DNA of 62,919 bases, counting the filler, from Perkinsus chesapeaki ATCC PRA-425 (taxonomy: Eukaryota; Protista; Perkinsozoa): NCBI GenBank assembly GCA_013115145.1. It is 6 parts of 6 records of this genome, joined end to end, with 100 filler letters (N's around TTAATTAATTAA, not from the genome) between each part and the next. Parts side by side here need not be neighbours in the genome. Positions count along the whole stretch, not along the records: positions 1 to 24,385 come from JAAPAO010000543.1; 5 more parts are not named here. One strand, 5' to 3'. Position numbers and translations under genes: made by a program. Position 1 is the first letter of the stretch, and the number at the start of each line of letters is the position of its first letter. Below are positions 6,932-23,504 of the stretch, piece after piece. The notes below the pieces were generated by a model that was given only the letters and a program-made list of their open reading frames with translations, ran no database searches and was not told the DNA's origin.

Positions 6932-7639
<708 letters not shown>

Positions 7640-9613: not shown

Positions 9614-12600
9614 ATGAGTTCAGCGCGGCGTAGAATATCTGAGGTATGGCTGCCAGAGCTTTGCTGGAGCGAACGGACTGGCCGATTCGAAACCAACATG
9701 GGGGTCCGCTGCCCTTTGGTGATCGCTTGGTAGTGGATGGCTAATTGATTCAGGTTGCTGTGACCAAGTCGGGTGACATTGCTGAGGTTTTTGAGGACGT
9801 ACGAGAGATACCGAAGGACTGTAGCAGAAGGGAGCTGAGGAGAGTGGCTATGATGCCGGGCTTTGTCAACTGCCATAGCCACGCCTTTCAGAGGAATCTG
9901 AGAGGAAAAGGAGAGTCGGAATATCAAACAGGTGCCGATTTAGAAGAGGGATTCATCGATTCTAGTAGCGTTTCATTTATGAAAACGAATCGCAGAATCG
10001 ACCTCAAATGTGTCGATTGGATGGTCTCTCAGGCCGGGTGGGAGCGGAGGCTAACTTTTGGTCCTGGCGAGAGGAGATGTATGGTCTTGTGGATAAGGTG
10101 GCTGATGACCCTAATAAGATGAAGGACGTCTGCCGGTGAGAAAGTCTTCATAAGCTCACTGTTCTTCATTATTTTCATGTCATCTTCATAACCAACGGGG
10201 GATTTCATCACCATGCATATTGGCAACTCACAGTGCACGAACCGTTGGTGAAATACGTCGGCCTGCGTGTCAACTACTATTAACGCGTCTCGTCCCTTAT
10301 CCGATGCCCCCTTGAAGTTTTCAAGGTGTACCTTGATAACCACACTCTTTACCGTCGTGTTAGTATGCTTTCACGATAAAAAATTTTGGAGTTTTGCTGG
10401 GTTTTTTCTGACCGATCGGTAGCGGAAAAGGATTGTTTTTATACGTTTCATAAGTCGGAGTTCTGACCGCGTTTTCTTCCAACTTGGAAATTGTGTCAGC
10501 CGCTGCTTCGAAGAGATGCGAGACGCCGGTATCACTAGTGTGGGAGAGTTTCACTACCTCCATCATACCGACTCGGCCGCTGCGAACGACTTTTTGCTGG
10601 ATAAGGCTGTGCTGGAGGCGGCCGATGAGGCCGGGATACGGATGAGGCTTATTGAAACGTAGGTGGCTCCTCCTCCAGTTTGTCGCACTAGTTAATATCA
10701 GTCATCTTTCGTGAAGGGGGGAAATTGATTCGCTTCGAAATGACCGATGTGTTACTGGGAGAGGAGCGACGAGGAATCGGGTTTATCGAGGGGCTCGACT
10801 AATTCGGTCGAGCTATGATCAAATTCCACTACGATTGCGAGGTTTGTGGAACTTCCTCGGTTTTCCTCCTTTCTGACGGCTCCGTTGGATGGGGCGATGA
10901 GTCGATCTCCAAATAGTACCAAAAGTACCAAATAACACCCCACGGCATATCCCCTCCAATCTGCATAGTGATGAGGTCCTTAGTTTGCCTTCGATTGTGT
11001 AGATATTACCATTCGTCATCGGTGGATGGTAAGCCTCTAGAAGGCAGCCAGAGACACTTCGAGTCCGGCGAGCCCGACGTACTGCCGAGATCCTTGAGCC
11101 ATTTTGTGGAGGCTTCCTTCAGTCTTTGTCGATCTTCAAGGAGCAGTTCGGTCATCTGGAGGCCACGGTGGCAGATAATCCTCTTCTAAGTCTTGGAGTT
11201 GCTGCACATTCAATCAGAGGATGTGACGCTGTGACGGCCAAGAAGCTTTTGGACTTCGCAAGGGAGAAGGGCGTTCCTTTTCACATGCACGTTGAAGAGC
11301 AGACTAAAGAGATAGAGGCGGCCAAAGCAGTGTAGGTGCTCGGGGATATCTCGCACTTGTCGCCAAATCATATCAACTAAGTTGCAAGGATTTATCAACA
11401 GTCGTTGGCATCGCGTGGTTATGCGGTCGTAGGTGGGAAAGGTTTTGCTAGGGGGAAATATTTGTGAGATTGTCCCATTCCGAGAGCATCATATCTCCCC
11501 CCCCCTAAGCTTCCCGGCTTTATCCCTCGCCCATCCATGATATCGTTCGATGACAGATACAATGGTCGAACTGTGTCGAGGGTCCTCCTGGACCACGGTG
11601 TGTCTGGTCCTGATGTCACCTTAATACATTGCACACATACCTCAGTAGCGGACATGGAAGGGCTAGCCGCGGCCGGCGCGAATATATGTATTTGTCCGAC
11701 CACTGAGGGTTGCCTGGCCGATGGGCTGCCGGATCTCTCCCAGCTCCGACCGAGTCATGGGCAGGTCCTCAGCGCCGCGATGTCTGCTTCTTGATCGGGC
11801 TTATCAGGTCTGCATCGGTTCCGATTGCAACGCTCGTATTGATAGTTTAGAGGAGCTCAGATGGCTCGAGTACGCCCACCGAGTTCGGACTCATCGCAGA
11901 GGTGTTATCATTACGGACACCTATAAAAGTGGAGAGGCGGAGGAGTCCAAGTTGGCGGTACGGAGGGACCTTTGATCTTTTGAGCCATGGGGAATATTCC
12001 GATTACCGAATCGAAGTTTCCCCCAGCATTTGAAGAGCATCGCGGGGCTCTCTCAGACGTTCCTGCTGGGCATTGCAACCTGGGCCGGAGCACGTTCGCT
12101 AGGCCTATTGAACACGGGAAGGATTGCCGCTGGATACTCAGCTGACATTAACCTTATTAACTTGGAGCACCCTGCTCTGTCGGCCCTGGAAGGTGATATC
12201 CGGGACGTCCTGGCGCCGGCGTTGGTGTTTGGTCTGAGCGCCAATGAGGCTGTTTGTGCGAGCGCTGTCGGTGGAAAGTAAGGTGCGCGTGGACGGATGG
12301 GGAGATCGAATCGATTAGATGGCGAATCACGCCGTCTGGCTTGGCGGTCAGCGCGGTGGAGTTCCTCAATAGACCGTTGAAGATCGAGCACCATGTGATT
12401 CTGCAGAAGGGAGCGCTGCCTGATGACCCCGAAGATGCCCTGGCTCTCGCTCGAGCGTTGATTGATTCGGCCAGCCCTAGTGGGTATGAAGAGAGCATGG
12501 CTGAGGTTATCGTCGAGAGGCTTAAGATGACAGGCTGGCAGGTGAGGAGGCTGTGTGATAGATACATAAGAGGAGGGCCGCTGTTGTGAGGTAACTTGGT

Positions 12601-14110
12601 GTTCCGAAGACTACGGGGCTTTGCGGCGCGAATTCTAGAAGGATGAAAATTGGGGTCGATCTGAAGTCTTCGTCAATGGCTGATTCGCTACCCAATTTCA
12701 TACAATATTTAAGACTGTGTCTTGTGAAGAATTATTTAATTTTAAGGAGACGCTCCTTATTACTATTTTAAGAAAGACGGTACCGATGATGAGTGGTCAG
12801 GTAGAGACCTTCGAGGTTGCCCCTCAGCAGAACAACCCGGATGGCCCCATTCGCCATAACGTATTGGCTTATCGTCCAGGAAGTAGAGAGAGCATTGAAG
12901 TGCTCTTTAATACACATTTGGACACTGTCCCGCCGCACTTTGATTCCTTCATCGATAAAGATCCAACCACCGGCCGCGAGAGATTGCGCGGGCGAGGGGC
13001 ATGCGACACCAAGTCGTTGTCGGCGTCGATGATCATAGCAGGCGACAGGCTTGTCCAGGTGAGCAGCAGGGCCGGCTCGATGACGCATGTAGTCTTTGGG
13101 CAGGCCGGTTTGGGCAGTAAAGTGGGGTTCCTGTTTGTGGTGAGTGAGGAGACTGATCACAGCGGCATGACAGCGGCGAACGAACAGGTCGGAAGGCTAT
13201 TGCCGAATCTGAGGTCAGTGGACATTTTTGATGGAGCTGGTAGAGTGTTGAATTAGATATGTTATTGTCGGAGAGCCAACAGCTGGAAAGGTTGTCGTGA
13301 ACCAGAAGGGTGTCGTGAAGATACGCCTTACAGCTCGAGGCATCGCTGCTCACAGTGGCTACCCTCACCTTGGCAAGAGTGCTATCCACACCCTGACTCA
13401 GTTGCTACAGGAAGTTCTTGGGCATCCTTGGCCGAAGGATGATGTATTGGGAAGTAAGAGATTCCCAGTGAAGTTACTCTCCTTTACTTTTCCTGAGCTC
13501 GTAGGCGGGAGCCGTCCTTGCGGATGGTTATGCGGTATCAGATACAGACGTCAACATTGGCCGTATCGAAGGTGGGCAAGCCGACAATGCCTTGGCGGAG
13601 AAATGCAAGGCAACTCTAATGTTTAGAGTTACCGAATCGTAGGCCAACCGTGGTGAAGTAATCCTCATTATTTTTGCCGTAGAGCTGCCCATATCATCGC
13701 AGATGTCAACAAGCTCTGTGCAAAGGCAACCGGTGCCACAGTTGAGGCTGAAGTCATCACTAGAAATGAGCCTGTGGATATGAGATACGTCAGAGAGTAG
13801 GAGCAAGGTGCGCTCTCGGTGGTCTATATGTCTCGCACAGGCTTATCAAAGGGTACCCCTTCGGAGTCGCTGCTTTCAATACCGACATCTCCTTTTTCTC
13901 TCCAACTCTCGACAAGCTCGGGGCAAAAGCCGTTCTGTAAGGCGTGCGAATTGCTTTTATTCCACTTAGACATTCCGTTGGTAATTCCTCAGGTTCGGCT
14001 TGGGTGACATCTGTGATGCTCACTGCGAGCGAGAGTACATATTCGTTGAAGATCTGCCTAAGTGCGTCATTGCTTACGAAGACATAGCTAAACAGCTTTT
14101 GAACATGTGA
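9614..14110 (+). CDS. hutF: Fusion protein: N-terminal formimidoylglutamate deiminase (HutF-like amidohydrolase) plus C-terminal M20 family (ArgE/acetylornithine deacetylase-like) metallo-deacylase
   Basis: HutF motifs across exons: PGFVNCHSHAFQR, NFWSWREEMY, EMRDAGITSVGEFHYLHH, GVAAHSIR, HMHVEEQ, LIHCTH, CPTTEGCLADG, IGSDCNARIDSLEELRWLEYAHR. M20 motifs: LIDSASPSGYE, FNTHLDTVPP, GRGACDTK, VSEETD, VGEPT, GIAAHSGYPHLGKSAI, NIGRIEGGQADN, FGLGDICDAHCEREYI. A 41-nt intron (12278-12318) joins the two in frame. Confidence 0.85.
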
Positions 14111-14262: not shown

Positions 14263-14335
14263 GCGGCTTTGGCGCAGTAGGTAGCGCGTAGGTCTCATAA
14301 TCCTAAGGTCGCGAGTTCGATCCTCGCAGGCCGCA
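14263..14335 (+). tRNA. tRNA-Met (CAT), elongator type
   Basis: 73 nt cloverleaf: acceptor GCGGCTT/AGGCCGC, D arm TGGCGCAGTAGGTAGCGCG, anticodon arm TAGGT-CTCATAA-TCCTA with a U-U pair at 31:39, T arm GCGAG-TTCGATC-CTCGC. It lacks the initiator A1:U72 pair and ATCG T-loop. Confidence 0.95.
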
Positions 14336-14443
14336 CTTTCTGTGCATGTTAATTGAACACAACAATGGGATTGAGTTGAAAAAGTATACGCAAAATACAC
14401 AAGCTGCATGGTATAAAGGCTGCATCGTACTGGAATGGTGAAT

Positions 14444-15943
14444 CTAACAGGAAAATAAATCAGAACCTTTCCAGGCTGTCGACCAAAGTTTGCACAGAAT
14501 AATATACCTATGTTTTAACGGCTCTGACAATTCCAACCAATTCTCTTTAATCTCATTCTCATATAAAACACTTGGGCTGGGATCGGGTCCAATAAACCGA
14601 TAAGATGTCAAAGCCGATTGAAGCATCTGGTCGGTCGTCGAAGAGGCTATTGCCAAAGGAGACTCCACAACACCTTGCCGTACAGAAGGATGGGAAATGA
14701 CCAGTCCCGGAGACTGCCATTCAGATAGGGTTCGACGGAGTAGGAATAAAGAGCGTGGGTGACTTAAGCGAAGCTCTACAATGCTTTGAGAATCCAACGG
14801 GCAGAACGGAATGCGCACAGCAAAGAATATCAACTTGGGCATGCACTTTGGGATCTCCCACAAAGCTCGAACCTTCTCCTTCGATAGAGAGTTCGAACCA
14901 GCGATCCTAACACCGCTCAAATCGAAACGGGTGATCTTGCTGATGTCGGCTTTGCGGAGGAATCGTATCATAGGTTTTACGTCCATACTTAACCCACAGC
15001 TCCTAGAGGTAACCGTCAAAGAAACCAACGAAGGCGGGAAGATAAGTTTATCTGGCAGGGAGCTTCGCTCCGCTAACCACAAAGACTGCAGATCAGGAGC
15101 GCTACTGATGAGCTCGATAGCAGCGTCCTTGGAGTTTGGCCCACAGCACACGTTGACCAGAGTAAGGCTGTGCAACTTGGCGGTCGATGCCAAAGAGAGC
15201 TGATCCATAACAACGGCCACTTTGACGTCGCTGATTTGGGAGTTGTAGCATTCGAGCGTAAGATGCCTCAAGTCAGGGAAGAACTTATGCTTGTCGAGGA
15301 GGGCCGACAGAGCGCGCCGATGACCATCGGTATCTATGGCAACTCTCAACACCTTCACGACCTTCGTATCAATTTGGGGAACCACTCGCAGAAAGGATTC
15401 GTGCACCTTGCCAGACAAGTCCAGAACTGGCAGTCGAATCGCTCCGCAGACAGGATAGAATATCTCACGGAAGAGCCTGCAAGTGGCAGCCAGCCGACAA
15501 ATGCTGCGCATGTCGAGGAACTCCGCTGGGCCCGTCACCTGCACCGAACTTTCGATGACCAATCTAGGAGCCTTCATGACCCGCTTTGGGGTCGGCATGG
15601 TCTCGGCCAGCGTGCTGCTGTCGGAGCCTCTACCTCGCTTTTTGCTGCCCAAGGGGGAGTCGTCAGAACTGTCGTAGTCGATGTTGTTGAGCGATATGTC
15701 TGTCTCGAGGGTCTCCAAGATCACGGCCGGCTTATCTTTCCTCGGCGCACGCTTGCCGGTTCGCGGCTTAGCCTTGCTCTTCGCCTTGGCTTTCCCCTTC
15801 GGCTTGGCGGCCGCCGTCTTACATACAGACGGCGGAGTTACGGCCAAGACGTCAGCGGCATCAACACCCTTGAGAATGCTTCTATGCAATCGAGGAGACT
15901 TTACGAAGTCGCCAGGGTTGAGGCGACGACTGCGGCGCATCAC
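14444..15943 (-). CDS. Intronless F-box-like protein with LRR-like repeats and basic N-terminus
   Basis: 499-aa uninterrupted ORF; F-box-like EFLDMRSICRLAATCRLFREIF followed by LxxLxL repeats (LRHLTLEC, LHSLTLVN, LQSLWLAE, LVSLTVTS). Confidence 0.6.
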   Translation of the reverse strand: MMRRSRRLNPGDFVKSPRLHRSILKGVDAADVLAVTPPSVCKTAAAKPKGKAKAKSKAKPRTGKRAPRKDKPAVILETLETDISLNNIDYDSSDDSPLGSKKRGRGSDSSTLAETMPTPKRVMKAPRLVIESSVQVTGPAEFLDMRSICRLAATCRLFREIFYPVCGAIRLPVLDLSGKVHESFLRVVPQIDTKVVKVLRVAIDTDGHRRALSALLDKHKFFPDLRHLTLECYNSQISDVKVAVVMDQLSLASTAKLHSLTLVNVCCGPNSKDAAIELISSAPDLQSLWLAERSSLPDKLIFPPSLVSLTVTSRSCGLSMDVKPMIRFLRKADISKITRFDLSGVRIAGSNSLSKEKVRALWEIPKCMPKLIFFAVRIPFCPLDSQSIVELRLSHPRSLFLLRRTLSEWQSPGLVISHPSVRQGVVESPLAIASSTTDQMLQSALTSYRFIGPDPSPSVLYENEIKENWLELSEPLKHRYIILCKLWSTAWKGSDLFSC

Positions 15944-16017: not shown

Positions 16018-17642
16018 TCAGAGTTCGTCAGAGGAAGCGTCTTCTATCCACGTCACTGCCAGAGCGTCGGCGTACGGCACGGACACTTTCTGAATCACCG
16101 TATTGAACTTCACCAGCCCCTTCGGTGATGCTGTTACCGTATCGCTCTGAAGATCGGCTTGTTAAGAGACTTCCCGGACCGGCTCACCTGGACCATACTG
16201 AGGTAGTCTTTCATTAGGCGCGCCTTGGTTCCAGCGTTATCAACCAAGATGACTGTGCCTGGACCAGCAAAGCCTCGCTCTAGCATCACCGTAAGGTCCT
16301 GAAACCATAAAGAAAACTCGAATTTCTTTGAAAATCCCGAAAATTCCGGGAATTTTCCTCATCGATTGGAAATGTACCTGTTTGAAGGTCGACGGATTAT
16401 GATCCATGAAAATGATGTCGGCAGTTTTCATTCCCGACTCCTGGAGTGCTTCAATCAAATCATCCATCCCTTCTGGCATCAACATCGCCGTATATTCAAT
16501 GGTATGCCGAGCTCGCCCGGTCGATGGATCTCGAACGGCATGGCCAATCAACTGAGGGAAATATTGCGGAAGCTCCTCGGGAGTAATTCCCACCTGTTTG
16601 CCGAGTTGAAGCCAATGAGGATTCTCCTCCACAGACACAATCTTGACCTTTCGTCGCCCAGCGCCACTTAGAAACCGCAGAGTACCGTCGCCGCTATGAG
16701 AGCCGAGCTCTAAGATTTGCAAACGATCGCGACCTTCGGGTATCTTTGTGGTCGCCACGGTGAAGGACAGTATCTCGCCTGAAACCGTCGAGCGTGAGAA
16801 TGCAGAGGAGCGGGGGGACTACGGATTAAAGTGCAAGTAAGAATTCAACCATTGCAAGATGAATATATTGTACGCTCCAATGTGCCGAGGGAGACGTCCT
16901 TGAGTTAAGCTGCTTCCGCATCCTATGAAAACTCCACAGTGCTTTACGAGCCGCGTCACATCCCCCCCTCGAGGAGTGATGGAGTGCTGAATAATACAGC
17001 GGTAGAAGATAACGGGAGCAATACGAAGGACGGTATAATGGTATAGTGGCACTAAGTTTTCATAGGAGTAGCTGCTCCCAGTGATGGGCGATCTTTCAGT
17101 AGGGTACTCAATACCCGGTACTGGAAGGAACTACCGCAGCAGACCAGCACCTGTATTGTTCACCAATACCAGTGGAAGGTGAACCCAAAACTCACATAAG
17201 AAGGACCTTCATGTTTCGCTACTTCAATAAAGGGTAACCACGGACCGGTTAAGCCAATTCCCCGGACTCGCACGGGCACCACTCAAGCGCACTTTCGATC
17301 TGCCTGATTGAACCACCCACCTTTTTCGTCTCCCAGAGTTAGCCCCCCTCCATAGCGCGCGGAAAAGCCCTCCGCTTCGGTGATGCAGTCCTTTATCGAG
17401 CCGCCCTCGGCAGTGCCCACCACATGCTCCACCAGTCCTGACAATGAATTCTTCACAGTGCGATACAGGCGTATCTTTCTACTGTCGTCCAAGCTGCCAG
17501 CTTCAGGACGGTGATCGTCTGGTTTCGGATGATAACCTCCACCAGGCTTCAACTCCCCAACGACTTGAGGCTTCCCGGACTTTGGCACCGCACCACGAAC
17601 TATCAGCAGACAGAGCACCGAGATGAGGGTGAAGAATCTCAT
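16018..17642 (-). CDS. Catechol O-methyltransferase-like SAM-dependent methyltransferase with signal peptide and C-terminal SDEL
   Basis: N-terminal MRFFTLISVLCLLIVRGA; COMT-like motifs GLTLGDEKG, ILELGSHSGDGT, VSVEENP, IIFMDH, GTVILVDNAG; last exon ends DASSDEL*. Confidence 0.75.
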
Positions 17643-18131: not shown

Positions 18132-21100
18132 CTACTGTCCAGTCAATCTTCTCTTGGCCTCCAACAACGCCTTCGCCGCCGCTGCGTTCTGATCCATACC
18201 TAACATCCTCATTATCCGAGGAGTGGCGAAGGAGGAAAATTTTAGGAAATTTCGCCGAAAAATTCCACCTGATTTTTTAATGCTACTACTCAACGCTATA
18301 TGACCTGCGGCCACTCAGTTAACAAAATGCAGCAAACTCCAACTGAGAGCATCACATTACCATTCCCTCATCTCGACCTGCTTACCCTCTTTAACATACT
18401 GCGAAAACAGCTCCTGCATGAGCTCCTTGGCTCCCACAGCTCTGCCCTCACCCGGCTTCTTGTCCACCGGGGCAGTGTAAACGCCAATGTTATGCAGGTG
18501 GCCTCCGCATCCAACCTTGAAGCCAGTCACTCGTTTCCCATCGCCTCTCTTGACCAAAGAAAACTCCGCTCCGCCATTTCCACCAGCGCTGACTTCTCGA
18601 CCGTTGAAGGTTCGAATCGAGAGATAGTCGATCCAGCTGCCCGATCGGCCAGTGACTTCAGTGATGTAATCACCATCATCGATCGTCATGGCGTGAGCTT
18701 TTGCCTCTCCATGCGGGGATGAGGAGATGGCCGTATCACGACGGCAGGAGTCACCGGAGCACCACATAACCTAAAGCAAAGCGTTGATCCCAGCTGGGGC
18801 CTGAAGTTTTCGCGTAACATATTCTGTTTTTAGTGCCTTCTTTGGCTCTCCGAGGCCCACTCCGGGGTTGACTCGCCAACATTCGATTAAGTCGATTTCA
18901 CGCATATACTTCGACACGTGAATTCTATACAAGCGGATATAAAAATCCACTAAGTAACTTAGATTGTATCGCTTTTCCTCCTTCATGCAGCAGACAACTT
19001 TATTCCTCCCGAAAATGCTGAGAGCACCAAGATTGGAAGATCAGCCTTCCCGTGAACACTGACGACAAATTCCCGAAATGGGCGACAGAGGCTCAAATAG
19101 ATCCGAAATCGTTACAGCAACACTGTAATAGTGTAACATATGCTAGTTCCACATATCACTGGTGACCTAGATATAATTAAATTCATCATTACATTACTTA
19201 CATACCTATATTGATATAAGTTCCTCCAATCCCCAATCCCCTCACCTCCATTCCGTATACAGCAATATCATCTCCAAGTATCCTAACCTCGCTCATATGC
19301 TCTCCTGCCTTCGGTCGCAGGCTTATAACCTCTGTATCATCATGAGTTGGACCATGGCACTCTAGATCGCCTGGATTCTCATGGCCCAGCTCCCCTCGCT
19401 CTCTCCGCCATTCCACGGACCCAGTCTGGCGGCCGCTGCTGACAGCCGTCTTGGAGTCCTTGAAGGGGTTCACTCCAGTCGCCGAGGATTCATCTTCATC
19501 CGAGCCGATTGTCGCATCTTCCCGGGCCGATCGATCGTGATAAAACTTCCTACTCGCTGCCACGGCAGATGGCGCTACTTGTTGAAGGCGAGCGAAGTAG
19601 GTGTTCTGTAGGGCATCATTGACAGCCAAGATGGCCTAAAGGGAAGGCAAGTCATCATAGACCACCGAAACTGAGCGGACACTGCTACTGAGGATTTGCG
19701 AAACTGAGAGGACTTTGCTATTATCTAGGTTCTTAGACTGTGCTAGATCGACCAATTTCTTCAGATGATTTGAATACAGAATAAACTTGAGATGCAGCTA
19801 AGAAGGAATTCGAACCAAGCTGCCTCCCAGCTTTCTTCCGACTCCATTTTTTTACCTTTCCCATGCCTTCACTATCACCTGCGTACTCTCTCCGACGCTT
19901 CTGGAATGCCTCCGTGGCCAACTGTCGAGTGTACCGCGACGTCACGTCACGACAGCCATCCTTGGAGGTTGCCCAAACCCACGAAAGATTCTTCTTCCAC
20001 CCCTGCTCGTACCTTAATCACGAGCGTCACTGCGCCACGAAATTCGACAGCTACATAAGAGGTGCGTCGATGACAGCTTCACACGGGTCCACATGAACCC
20101 ACCGCTTTTGGCGATCAACCCAAATCTCCGACCAGACATGATCTGTCGCGTCGATGACGTGCCGAACCTGCTGATAGTGTGAATCCTAACCCAAGCTTCA
20201 CCGAGCCTGACCTCGAAGCCCAGACTCCTGGCTACTAGACAGAAACAATTGGCCCATTCACCACATCGACCACTTCTGGTGTGAAGAAGAGCCACGGGAT
20301 GGTTAAAGCGGGGGTATCTCGTCAACGATCCGCATACTGTACAGCGGTAAATTTCAACCTGTCCCGAAATCTGATGACAAGCCAGCCAGGAAAGGCCCAC
20401 CTGGCCGGCCATGCCCTTCTGTTCCTCAGCAGTGGGCGTGGTGACGCCTTGGCTCTCGGTGTTCTTGCAGCCACAGGCCGCGCACTCTGGCTTATCCATC
20501 CATTTAAAGAAGGACTTCTTGAACCAAATAACGACCTCCTTCAGCAGACACTCAGGGTAGTAAGGGGAACCTGATAATCTTATGTGTCAACCCATCCACA
20601 GCGCTACGACTGGCAAGGGAATATCTCCCGTGCCGAAGGACGGGGGTGGTTTCTAGAGGCGCCTTGGAGCTCTACGGAGGATAAATCAGTGTGTGTGATA
20701 GTGTGCGGAAAGGACTAGTTCCAGTGTTAATACCGACAAAGTGTAACCCTTAAAGCACTCCTAAGACTTGGCCAATTCAATGCCATACACTACACTGCGT
20801 TTCTATCAACACTTTCTACACCACTAAGGCACCCCAAGTAGTACTACTACCAAAACTTGACCGGTAAATGGTATAGCCTTCATGGCCTCCAGTAACGTAG
20901 ATTGAATAGGTCTATTATATCATACGATAGGAACTTCCCCTACTCCGACCCTATGTAGCGAACATCACCACCTGACTCCCCTCCCCCTATCACCATCTTC
21001 CCCTTCTCCCACTAATCTCTTGCACCGTTCCACCGCCTTCCTGTGCAGCTCCACTACCGGTATTACCGACAGAGCCTGCTCCTGGTTAGACGGAACTTCG

Positions 21101-23243
21101 TAGAGCTGGAAAGGGAAAAAATTTAAGCGCTTCATGGGAGCTTATTTGGTGAAACGAATTTCATCAAAAGACGTTCTCGACCGTCTTACACTATACACGT
21201 TTTCGTTACGCATTCAGCGCTGAAAAGTTTGAGTAGTGATTTAACACGCTTGAGAGTTCTCTCGCTTGCAAGCGGAGAGTTCATTATGGAGCTGCCCACC
21301 TATGGATTGAACTAAGCGGCGCTGGCAAAGCGAGATGCCGATCCCTTCAGAGAGCCAGAGCAGCGGCGAAACCTACTCCGTGGTGGTGAGCCGATAGTTT
21401 ATAATATTGTGTACCGTCCTCACAAACACTAGGACGTCCTATTGTATAGGATGATTAATAACACTAAAGCGACTATTAGAGCTAACAATCGCAATCGAGC
21501 TCTCCAGGTCCGCCGCCTCTCCTGCCTCAATTCTTTTCCCCCTACCTGAACATGCATTCCATTATTAACCATCTGCTGTCGGACAGTATTCTTGAATGCC
21601 TCCCCACCGACTTTAGACTGTACCAGAGCTGTCAAGGCCGTCCTGACTCCCTGAGCCCAGGCATCCGCCTCGGCATCGTTAGCAGCTAATTTAGTTGGTG
21701 ATGGGTTAGATGGACTCAGCGAGGTGAGCACCTGATGGGCACCATAGGAGTTGGCATGAGCCCCTGGGCTGGCTAAATCAAGCCCAAAGGACCCGTATAG
21801 TCTAATGACGTAGAGTAACAGCAGTCAACTACAATAGTAAATGTATATAATGATATAATCGCTATGTGAAATTCGTTACCGATAAGACAACACACATATA
21901 TGTATAGCCATGGCCAACGCGAGGGACGAGCTTTTTCGGATTCAGCAAACCCTGTCGGCCAATATGCCATGGTTGAGGAGGACGAGTTAAGGCTCCCTCT
22001 GCGCCAGCTCCAGCGACTACTATCGAATGACCGGTTTGAACCCCCAATTTCGTCCGTTATATTTGCACTGCTAAAGTAAAGCAGCCATCCCGTCCATAGT
22101 ACCACAATCTCAACTTCCTTGCCACCAGCTAAGGCCAGACCAGTCATGTCCGCCTGTTGCAGCTCCCCTCCTTCCTTCCGGAGATCGCTGCTGAACATTC
22201 TGATAGAATTTTCGTCTCTGATGTCGAACAGGGATGATATCACAGCCCGCAAAGTAGTGATGTCTGTGGTCTCAATCTCTATCTGCTGCGTTTGCATCTC
22301 GTAAAGTATCTTAGCTCGAACCTCGACTTTCGCATTCGGTACCGAGTTAACAGACACCATAGGTGCCGCGGTATCTTTCGAGCTCTCAGCCTTGCTTTTT
22401 GCGATAGCTCTTCCCAGCGCACCACGGCTTGCCCTCAGCCATCCATCGTTGACAGCGGGCACCGTGTAGCCCGGATCAGCGCCGACGATTTTCTGCCAGC
22501 CGCACGCGGTCATTACGGCTTCACCTTCGGGAGTGCCCAACCCTGCCTGAGTAATAGCCTTGTTATGCAGCTTGACTGTCCTGAATTTGGTCTCGGACGG
22601 TCGGTTCAATACATTATTAACAAGTTTAAGGATCAACTCTTGGCCTTCCAGGCTCAACTTGGATGTAGCCAGCGCCACAGAGGCCGATGCTCCCGATAGG
22701 GCTTTCCAGGACTGCAGGCAGTTGACCATACCGCTCGGCCCCCCTTGCAAGGCTCGCATGACCTCCATACGACCGTCAGGGACACAGGACTAACAATAAT
22801 AAGCCTCGAGGAGCTAGCCACTGAGGCCTTACCTCTCCGTCGTAGTTGAGGACCTTCAGCGAGGGTATGCCACGAACGCCAAAGGTCTGGCTGAGCCATT
22901 GGGCTTGGGCACGATCGGAGTAGGCCAAGGCCAGCCAGTCACCATGCTCATTACGAAAGTAATCAAGCATATCCGACTCACTTCTATCGGAGCTCACAAA
23001 AACGATCTAAAGATACGCCCAGGAATCTTCATAGTGCGATACCTCCGCTCCTACCTCGAGCTTTATGCCCACCGACTTGGCCAGCTGATAGAACTGTTTC
23101 AGCATTGGTGTGAACTGACGGCACGGAGGGCACCAGTGGGCCGAGAAGTAGAGACAGACTACCGTCTGGTCATCGGGGACCGGCGCTGGCTGACCTGACT
23201 TGGTGATCAGAGGAAGGTTCGCTCTTGCTAAAAAACCGGACAT
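18132..23243 (-). CDS. PNG1: Peptide:N-glycanase (PNG1/NGLY1 family), probably with N-terminal nucleoredoxin-like thioredoxin and PUB domains and a C-terminal jacalin-like lectin domain
   Basis: Trx: LYFSAHWCPPCRQFTP...FGVRGIPSL. PUB: LILKLVNNVLNRPSETKFRTVKLHN. Core: WFKKSFFKWMDKPECAACG, TRYPRFNHPVALLHTRSGRCGEWANCF, DHVWSEIW, WVHVDPCE, YEQGWKKNLSW, GRQTGSVEWRRERGELG. Jacalin: DGDYITEVTGRSGSWIDYLSIRTFNGR...GGHLHNIG. The splice path between ~22100 and ~21800 could not be resolved unambiguously. Confidence 0.8.
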
Positions 23244-23504
23244 TTTGAAAAATACTTCGGGGGAAGTGTGAAGACTGGAAACGCAACACAGTGAAGGAAA
23301 TCCACGAGCAAAGATAATAGAGGAGGTGGCTGGCATCCTCAGAGGGGCAATAATCGCTACCGAAGGAATCTTACAGTTAACCGCGAAAGATACGAATGAG
23401 GTCAGATACACCACATCTGCTCCTCGGCGATTTTGACAACCATACCATGGCACGCTTTCATGTACAAACGGCGTCTGCATACCTTCTTGAGCACACAAAA
23501 AATT

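Follow-up and report, generated by a model that had tools for sequence, protein, structure and literature searches.

Within the 62,919-nt stretch of Perkinsus chesapeaki ATCC PRA-425 DNA analyzed here (the window), positions 9614-14110 of the forward strand very probably hold a single fused gene, whose predicted product joins a HutF-like domain (N-formimino-L-glutamate iminohydrolase) to a deacylase domain of the M20 family (HutF-M20). The best overall explanation, which we consider moderately probable, is that this one nuclear gene specifies a two-domain enzyme consisting of HutF and an M20 N-formylglutamate deformylase. In Pseudomonas, N-formylglutamate is hydrolyzed by N-formylglutamate amidohydrolase (FGase), whose fold is unrelated to M20. 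By sequence and gene context, the conserved HutF-M20 fusion appears to be genuine and tied to histidine utilization (Hut), and it is a testable Rosetta-stone fusion rather than a new kind of system.

An earlier, first-pass annotation of this DNA had placed the apparent stop codon of the HutF-like frame, a TAA, inside a 41-nt intron at 12278-12318, and our gene model, the deposited P. chesapeaki protein and the corresponding intron of P. marinus all agree with this. Exon 9 ends ...GGT GGA AA at 12277 and exon 10 begins at 12319, such that the spliced product reads ...SAVGGK|WRITPSG...; past the junction, the frame runs through a short linker into the M20 domain and ends with a TGA at 14108-14110. 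Both the deposited protein and the P. marinus orthologue use exactly this junction, and the P. marinus intron (44 nt, GT..AG) has an identical position and phase and also opens with an in-frame stop. When the two species were compared, the 60 codons before the intron differed at 10, 10, and 41 first, second, and third positions, respectively, and the 74 codons after it, linker included, at 15, 7, and 45. This bias toward third positions on both sides of the junction is a signature of coding sequence in the spliced frame. HutF profile matches reach position ~427 of 455 where exon 9 finishes, so ~25 HutF profile positions remain past the apparent stop. That splicing completes the terminal HutF strand, as had been proposed, was confirmed in two ways: the consensus of bacterial HutFs and fusions reads on ...VGGxWR... 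across the splice, with K-W-R flanking the intron, and an AlphaFold2 model built from an alignment of 25 fusions (mean predicted local distance difference test score [pLDDT] of 83) has strands at residues 468-473 and 476-479, the second of which is the post-intron KWRI and is confidently predicted. In the model these are followed by a disordered linker (residues 482-504, pLDDT ~30) and then by a confident M20 fold. It had also been claimed that no in-frame ATG precedes the M20 N-terminal motif; indeed, the first one, at 12497, lies 59 codons past the splice and beyond the SPSGYEE motif. Finally, two environmental eukaryote copies (L003 and L010) encode the fusion as single uninterrupted open reading frames (ORFs) of 846 and 765 amino acids (aa), and an Amoebophrya peptide from the MMETSP transcriptomes holds both domains.

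An exon-by-exon rebuild from raw sequence gave a 2637-nt coding sequence with 17 exons and 16 introns, all of them GT..AG, and a predicted product of 878 aa if the exon 9 acceptor is at 12027 or 868 aa if it is at 12057. Introns of 41-56 nt make up nine of the 16, so a length of 41 nt at the junction is ordinary for this gene. The features are as follows:

9614-14110, forward strand: HutF-M20 gene, whole coding span; 868-878 aa, stop codon TGA at 14108-14110; junction matches the deposited protein and the P. marinus orthologue
9614-9703, forward strand: exon 1, aa 1-30, start ATG at 9614; HutF N-terminal strand EVWLPELCW; same in the deposited model, conserved in P. marinus
9754-9931, forward strand: exon 2, HxH metal motif FVNCHSHAFQR; HutF profile positions 22-74
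10033-10135, forward strand: exon 3, FWSWREEMY; HutF profile positions 75-100
10500-10658, forward strand: exon 4, VGEFHYLHH; HutF profile positions 104-156
11003-11078, forward strand: exon 5, QRHFESGEPD; followed by a 44-nt intron (11079-11122) that restores the frame, with the same join in the deposited model
11123-11331, forward strand: exon 6, AAHSIRG and FHMHVEEQ; HutF profile positions 182-247
11557-11764, forward strand: exon 7, IHCTH and CPTTEG; HutF profile positions 250-310
11808-11957, forward strand: exon 8, IGSDCN and EELRWLEY; HutF profile positions 318-356
12027-12277, forward strand: exon 9, last purely HutF exon, ending ...SAVGG + AA; acceptor more probably at 12057
12278-12318, forward strand: junction intron, 41 nt, GTAAGG...GATTAG, phase 2; contains the apparent stop TAA at 12279-12281
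12319-12541, forward strand: exon 10, last HutF strand KWRI, ~25-residue disordered linker and M20 N-terminus SASPSGYEE
12801-13058, forward strand: exon 11, M20 motifs NTHLD and GRGACD
13104-13213, forward strand: exon 12, VSEETDH, with the general base and a metal ligand
13257-13453, forward strand: exon 13, GEPT, then the start of the M20 dimerization domain, AAHSGYPHLG; M20_dimer match
13542-13638, forward strand: exon 14, NIGRIEGG...DNALAE...MFR
13683-13796, forward strand: exon 15, placed by the gene model and the deposited and P. marinus proteins
13841-13936, forward strand: exon 16, FNTDIS
13993-14110, forward strand: exon 17 and stop codon, GDICDAHCEREY, with the last metal-binding His; P. 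marinus ends at the same place

The protein deposited for the same contig, FOL47_008453, is 910 aa long and its P. marinus orthologue 861 aa. The deposited model differs from our rebuild in three respects: an 11-residue insertion after exon 2, where its donor lies 33 nt further on, an exon 9 start that is 10 residues shorter, and an extra C-terminal exon. Both the insertion and the extra exon had pLDDT values <50 in the AlphaFold2 model, and the extra tail is absent from the P. marinus orthologue; the two look like annotation artifacts. For exon 9, the acceptor at 12027 was set aside, since the 10 residues that it adds are an insertion relative to all homologues and 12057 is more likely. A suspected frameshift or pseudogene at 11033-11186 was ruled out, as the 44-nt GT-AG intron at 11079-11122 restores the frame and the deposited model is joined likewise.

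For the N-terminal half, the best NCBIfam match of each exon scanned (2-4 and 6-9) was a HutF equivalog, and these matches were colinear over profile positions 22-427 of ~455. Taken whole, this half (P0151:1-480) scored 352.5 bits against NF006681 and 311.9 bits against TIGR02022 (354.3 and 323.3 bits in P. marinus); the curated cut-offs of these equivalogs are 362 and 413 bits. The next non-HutF family scored only 100-111 bits, which places the N-terminal half in the HutF clade as a divergent member. Its best match in the PDB was 3MDU, the N-formimino-L-glutamate iminohydrolase of P. aeruginosa (E = 1.5e-45). CHSHAFQR, FWSWRE, EFHY, HSIR, HMHVEEQ, IHCTH, and GSD align to their 3MDU counterparts in columns that are invariant in our HutF alignment (A1). 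In 3MDU, the metal and catalytic residues are HxH, His232, Glu235, His269, and Asp320, and the substrate-binding residues are Gln61, Arg82, Tyr121, and Arg209. By alignment to 3MDU, the metal, catalytic, and substrate-binding residues of HutF are all present in the Perkinsus protein, in keeping with the first-pass claim for the metal and catalytic set. HutF activity is thus predicted for the N-terminal half with good confidence.

The C-terminal half is an M20 domain with an intact active site. Fusion protein P0001 scored above the gathering thresholds of both PF01546 (Peptidase_M20, 55.7 bits) and PF07687 (M20_dimer, 67.9 bits), and the exons in the window match both families. All five metal ligands (His, Asp, Glu, Glu, His), the general-base Glu, and the His of the dimer lobe are kept, and HLD, GACD, SEE, GEPT, AAHSG, and DAH vary little or not at all among 25 fusions, as expected from the earlier reading of the ligands as intact. 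FGase (PF05013) gave zero matches anywhere in the HutF-M20 gene, and the M20 half lies outside this classical deformylase family. We regard the M20 half as a putative N-formylglutamate deformylase (EC 3.5.1.68), an assignment that we would call about even.

The fusion is not peculiar to P. chesapeaki. A search of the whole library with exon 11 returned long proteins matching at positions ~470-650, in which Pfam found Amidohydro_1 followed by Peptidase_M20 and M20_dimer. Thirty-two proteins had both the HutF and the M20 domain, always in the order HutF to M20; a profile scan and a search for the same architecture had been suggested by the first-pass annotation. The carriers are three species of Perkinsus, Amoebophrya, many Phytophthora, Pythium, Hyaloperonospora, the ichthyosporean Sphaeroforma, and environmental eukaryotes. 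A cluster of 69 members in the ESM Atlas is 100% eukaryotic, has both Pfam domains, and is automatically named 'Formiminoglutamate deiminase'. No bacterial HutF-M20 fusion was seen among the proteins and loci compared; one candidate, L022, proved to be merely an over-extended ORF in a GC-rich genome. Literature on formiminoglutamate/formimidoylglutamate deiminase, M20, oomycetes, and Perkinsus yielded no paper describing the fusion. With carriers in Perkinsus, Amoebophrya, oomycetes, and Sphaeroforma, the architecture is widespread, and it is already auto-named in public databases. The first-pass annotation had listed an architecture both widespread and characterized as a point that would refute its reading; the first part holds, and for the second we found no sign.

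Gene neighborhoods provided a link to histidine utilization. In Phytophthora sojae, the fusion and hutI (400.7 bits, cut-off 298) are 346 bp apart and divergently oriented on opposite strands, and in the environmental eukaryote L010, hutU (444 bits, cut-off 375) ends 30 bp upstream of the fusion, on a contig that also carries Arf GTPases, CDC48, and RIB43A. No hut genes occur within the 24-kb P. chesapeaki contig part of the window. Through its hutI and hutU neighbors, the fusion is linked to the Hut pathway on grounds other than HutF homology.

To place the M20 half in a bacterial context, we took the 80 bacterial loci with the highest-scoring matches to the bacterial HutF P0172, the nearest standalone relative of the fusions, and annotated their flanks. 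An M20 gene adjoins hutF in about half of them (~40). In ~20 loci, from Thermoanaerobaculia, Gemmatimonadota, Planctomycetota, Pyrinomonadaceae, and Myxococcota, an ArgE-type M20 gene is the immediate neighbor of hutF, and the stop codon of one gene often overlaps the start codon of the next. Another ~20, all actinobacterial, have the order hutU-M20-hutF-hutI with an M20 of the allantoate amidohydrolase (AllC) type, which bears out the statement in the first-pass annotation that M20 genes sit next to hutF in some actinobacterial hut clusters. FGase was found in only four loci, adjoining hutF in L047 and L066 and nearby in L046 and L080, and M20 and FGase occurred together in none of the 80. 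Three unrelated M20 lineages tied to HutF and alternating with FGase form the pattern expected of non-orthologous displacement.

Several of these bacterial loci deserve comment in their own right. Tunturiibacter lichenicola (L067:4974-10456, forward strand) has a complete, compact hutU-hutI-hutF-M20 operon with overlapping gene ends. Its M20 passes the acetylornithine deacetylase equivalog (309.5 vs. 297.7 bits), a name that is probably wrong, and is a candidate N-formylglutamate deformylase. The M20 between hutU and hutF in L088 (6676-7914) and in ~20 other actinobacterial loci passes the NCBI 'allantoate amidohydrolase' equivalog NF006770 with 637 bits and also resembles the N-carbamyl-L-glutamate amidohydrolase ErtE (259 bits), so that its automatic name is doubtful. 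In an uncultured member of the Actinomycetota (L065:7905-10460, forward strand), an 851-aa ORF holds HutF (7-435) and then HutI (498-850) and is either a HutF-HutI fusion or the product of a stop codon lost in assembly. In two Acidobacteriaceae loci (L090:7138-7932 and L079:7144-7929), neither M20 nor FGase is beside hutF, and the hutF start is overlapped by a gene for a CREG/PNPOx-like beta-barrel with DUF2470.

A number of observations weigh against HutF-M20 as a fused deformylase, and they are best considered along with the explanations that they favor. Two small RNA runs labeled P. chesapeaki contained none of the words sampled from the stretch, and no reads could be placed on it. This would suit a gene-model artifact, in which the TAA at 12279 terminates HutF and the M20 domain belongs to a gene of its own, expressed, for example, from a spliced-leader trans-spliced mRNA. 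Perkinsus mRNAs do undergo trans-splicing, and in databases P. olseni has some split or incomplete entries (a 346-aa amidohydrolase alone and a 613-aa partial protein). We nonetheless consider such an artifact very improbable: a stop at 12279 would drop the conserved last strand of HutF, and the M20 N-terminal motif would be left with no in-frame ATG before it. Moreover, the intron position is kept in P. marinus with the linker under coding constraint (15/7/45 by codon position), environmental relatives have one continuous ORF, and the Amoebophrya transcript carries both domains. The lack of matching transcript reads is also the one point in favor of two further readings, a relic gene that is silent or in decay and a contig of bacterial contamination, which we judge slightly more improbable still. 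The frame of 868-878 codons, the catalytic residues, and the canonical splice sites are all intact, divergence from P. marinus is biased toward third codon positions, and the gene has 16 spliceosomal introns and eukaryotic neighbors (genes for a ubiquitin-conjugating enzyme, an F-box-like protein, and a PNGase-like protein) that match the order in P. marinus.

A more serious alternative, which we regard as possible though doubtful, accepts the fusion and the HutF half and holds that M20 hydrolyzes some other N-acyl or N-carbamoyl amino acid (in the manner of DapE or ArgE, or N-carbamoylglutamate) or acts mainly as a dimerization scaffold, with N-formylglutamate handled elsewhere. The nearest solved structures by sequence are DapE enzymes (7LGP and 5VO3, E ~1e-18), and the M20 half fell under every NCBIfam equivalog or subfamily cut-off among those tried (ArgE TIGR01892, 126 vs. 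297.7 bits; DapE-ArgE TIGR01910, 128 vs. 217.6 bits; DapE TIGR01246 and TIGR01900), so no specific M20 substrate can be assigned by profile. A separate point against the main explanation is that the HutF half missed its own equivalog cut-offs, narrowly in the case of NF006681 (352.5 vs. 362 bits). Identity between the fused M20 and the ArgE-type M20s that adjoin bacterial hutF is only 25-31%, and the fused domain is not orthologous to the hut-linked M20s of bacteria. Its closest bacterial relatives (38-40% identity) are short proteins of the same clade; one of them, L008, is found in an aspartokinase-dapB-dapA-dapD operon, a DapE-like (lysine/DAP) context, and others (L006 and L091-L093) have no hut context. 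Standalone M20s of this clade also occur in nematodes (Caenorhabditis elegans, Steinernema, Strongyloides, and Haemonchus; e.g., P0284 and P0368; 38-42% identity) and in ochrophytes (brown and yellow-green algae). In L004, a fusion-type M20 adjoins an amidohydrolase that lacks two of the substrate-binding arginines of HutF; considered as a bacterial split version of the fusion, this locus was rejected, as the amidohydrolase has a His in place of the HSxR arginine, is without the WRE arginine, and is probably not a true HutF. The actinobacterial hut M20 resembles ErtE, as noted above, and for the AllC-type M20 of the Streptomyces avermitilis hut cluster, 'No deformylase activity detected' was recorded (PMC3223725, Table 3). 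The latter is a single negative assay of a different M20 lineage, yet it is a real caution. Against this alternative, Perkinsozoa, Syndiniales, oomycetes, and Ichthyosporea have all retained the fusion, and none of its catalytic residues varies, as would be expected if the M20 half were active and coupled to HutF. In addition, hutF is associated with M20s of three unrelated lineages, which exclude FGase and are excluded by it in the 80 loci examined, and the HutF product needs a deformylase, for which no other candidate was seen beside the eukaryotic genes (P. sojae and L010).

If HutF-M20 is indeed a HutF-deformylase, it might work as follows. The N-terminal (beta/alpha)8 amidohydrolase domain, as HutF, would convert N-formimino-L-glutamate, the product of imidazolonepropionase, to N-formyl-L-glutamate and ammonia. 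Beyond the ~25-residue disordered linker, the M20 domain, a di-zinc deacylase in the ArgE/DapE family with a dimerization lobe, would most likely then hydrolyze N-formyl-L-glutamate to glutamate and formate, i.e., do the job of FGase in Pseudomonas. Since the dimerization lobe is complete, the protein is probably a homodimer, and channeling between the two sites is conceivable. The fusion would then probably complete histidine breakdown without folate. The fullest version of this proposal, that a bifunctional enzyme taking formiminoglutamate to glutamate, ammonia, and formate represents a third eukaryotic route beside formiminotransferase-cyclodeaminase (FTCD) and formiminoglutamase, and that M20 joined HutF independently at least three times (as ArgE, AllC, and the eukaryotic fused type), is tentative, and we place it a little below even.

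Each part of HutF-M20 has known counterparts. With bacterial HutF (PA5106, PDB 3MDU; TIGR02022, NF006681) it shares the fold, the motifs HxH, FHY, HSxR, HxHxxEQ, HxTH, and GSD, and the C-terminal ...GG.WR strand, whereas the Perkinsus gene is eukaryotic, has introns, scores under the equivalog cut-offs, and bears an extra C-terminal M20 unseen in the bacterial HutFs here. The reaction proposed for M20 is that of the FGase/HutG-type N-formylglutamate amidohydrolase (PF05013), the second enzyme of the five-step Hut pathway, whose gene sits next to hutF in bacteria; however, the M20 fold is unrelated, and if M20 does the same job, this would be a case of non-orthologous displacement. ArgE/DapE M20 deacylases (DapE 7LGP, 5VO3, and 3IC1; acetylcitrulline deacetylase 2F7V; ArgE 3CT9) have the same Peptidase_M20 and M20_dimer domains and ligands, but the fused M20 falls in a distinct clade of short M20s and stands behind HutF. 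The animal enzyme FTCD likewise fuses two domains and removes formiminoglutamate as the last stage of histidine catabolism. Unlike HutF-M20, FTCD is folate-dependent, with unrelated folds and chemistry, and passes the one-carbon unit to tetrahydrofolate rather than releasing formate. A report on Trypanosoma cruzi describes a complete four-step histidine-to-glutamate pathway (PMC12203737), and on that account folate-independent disposal of formiminoglutamate would not be unique in eukaryotes. Nor is the idea of M20 replacing FGase new, since Gerdes et al. (2011; PMC3223725) predicted such a replacement downstream of HutF. The actinobacterial hut-cluster M20 of that work would similarly stand in place of FGase, but is of the allantoate amidohydrolase/carbamoylase type (NF006770, 637 bits) and is a separate gene.

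As to origin, the nearest standalone HutFs are bacterial (41-46% identity). In an unrooted HutF tree, the fusion halves grouped with a Planctomycetota/Gemmatimonadota/Thermoanaerobaculia clade, whose M20 partners are of the ArgE type, and were set apart from other HutFs by a well-supported branch. In the M20 tree, oomycete and Perkinsus/Amoebophrya/Sphaeroforma fusions formed one supported clade with the standalone ochrophyte proteins, and three environmental fusions fell elsewhere on long branches. The earlier suggestion of a bacterial origin followed by intron gain is plausible for the HutF half.

Were the M20 half proven to be a deformylase, the pathway hole in HutF organisms without FGase would be closed; among these are many members of the Acidobacteriota, Gemmatimonadota, Planctomycetota, and Actinomycetota, as well as plant-pathogenic oomycetes and Perkinsus, a parasite of oysters. 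It would be the first biochemical proof of M20 deacylases as the missing N-formylglutamate deformylase in such organisms, would reopen the 2011 prediction, set aside after one negative assay, and would give a clean Rosetta-stone case of convergent M20 recruitment. Database names such as 'formiminoglutamate deiminase', 'carboxypeptidase', 'metallopeptidase M20', 'acetylornithine deacetylase', and 'allantoate amidohydrolase' would have to be corrected. Since neither the chemistry nor either fold is new, the practical value would be modest.

Other features were seen around the gene. A tRNA-Met (CAT) gene is located at 14263-14336 (forward strand), ~150 nt downstream of the HutF-M20 stop codon, and the deposited model's additional C-terminal exon, probably an annotation artifact, reaches up to it. 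A ubiquitin-conjugating enzyme fragment lies upstream at 7256-7639 (forward strand). Downstream, all on the reverse strand, are a single ORF whose 499-aa product weakly matches F-box-like sequences (14444-15943), a Methyltransf_24-like ORF (16243-16758), ORF fragments encoding PUB, transglutaminase-core, and PAW domains that look like one multi-exon PNGase gene (19201-22768), and a thioredoxin-like ORF (23010-23498). The order of UQ_con, fusion, and methyltransferase is the same in P. marinus (L094), with UQ_con upstream and the methyltransferase downstream.

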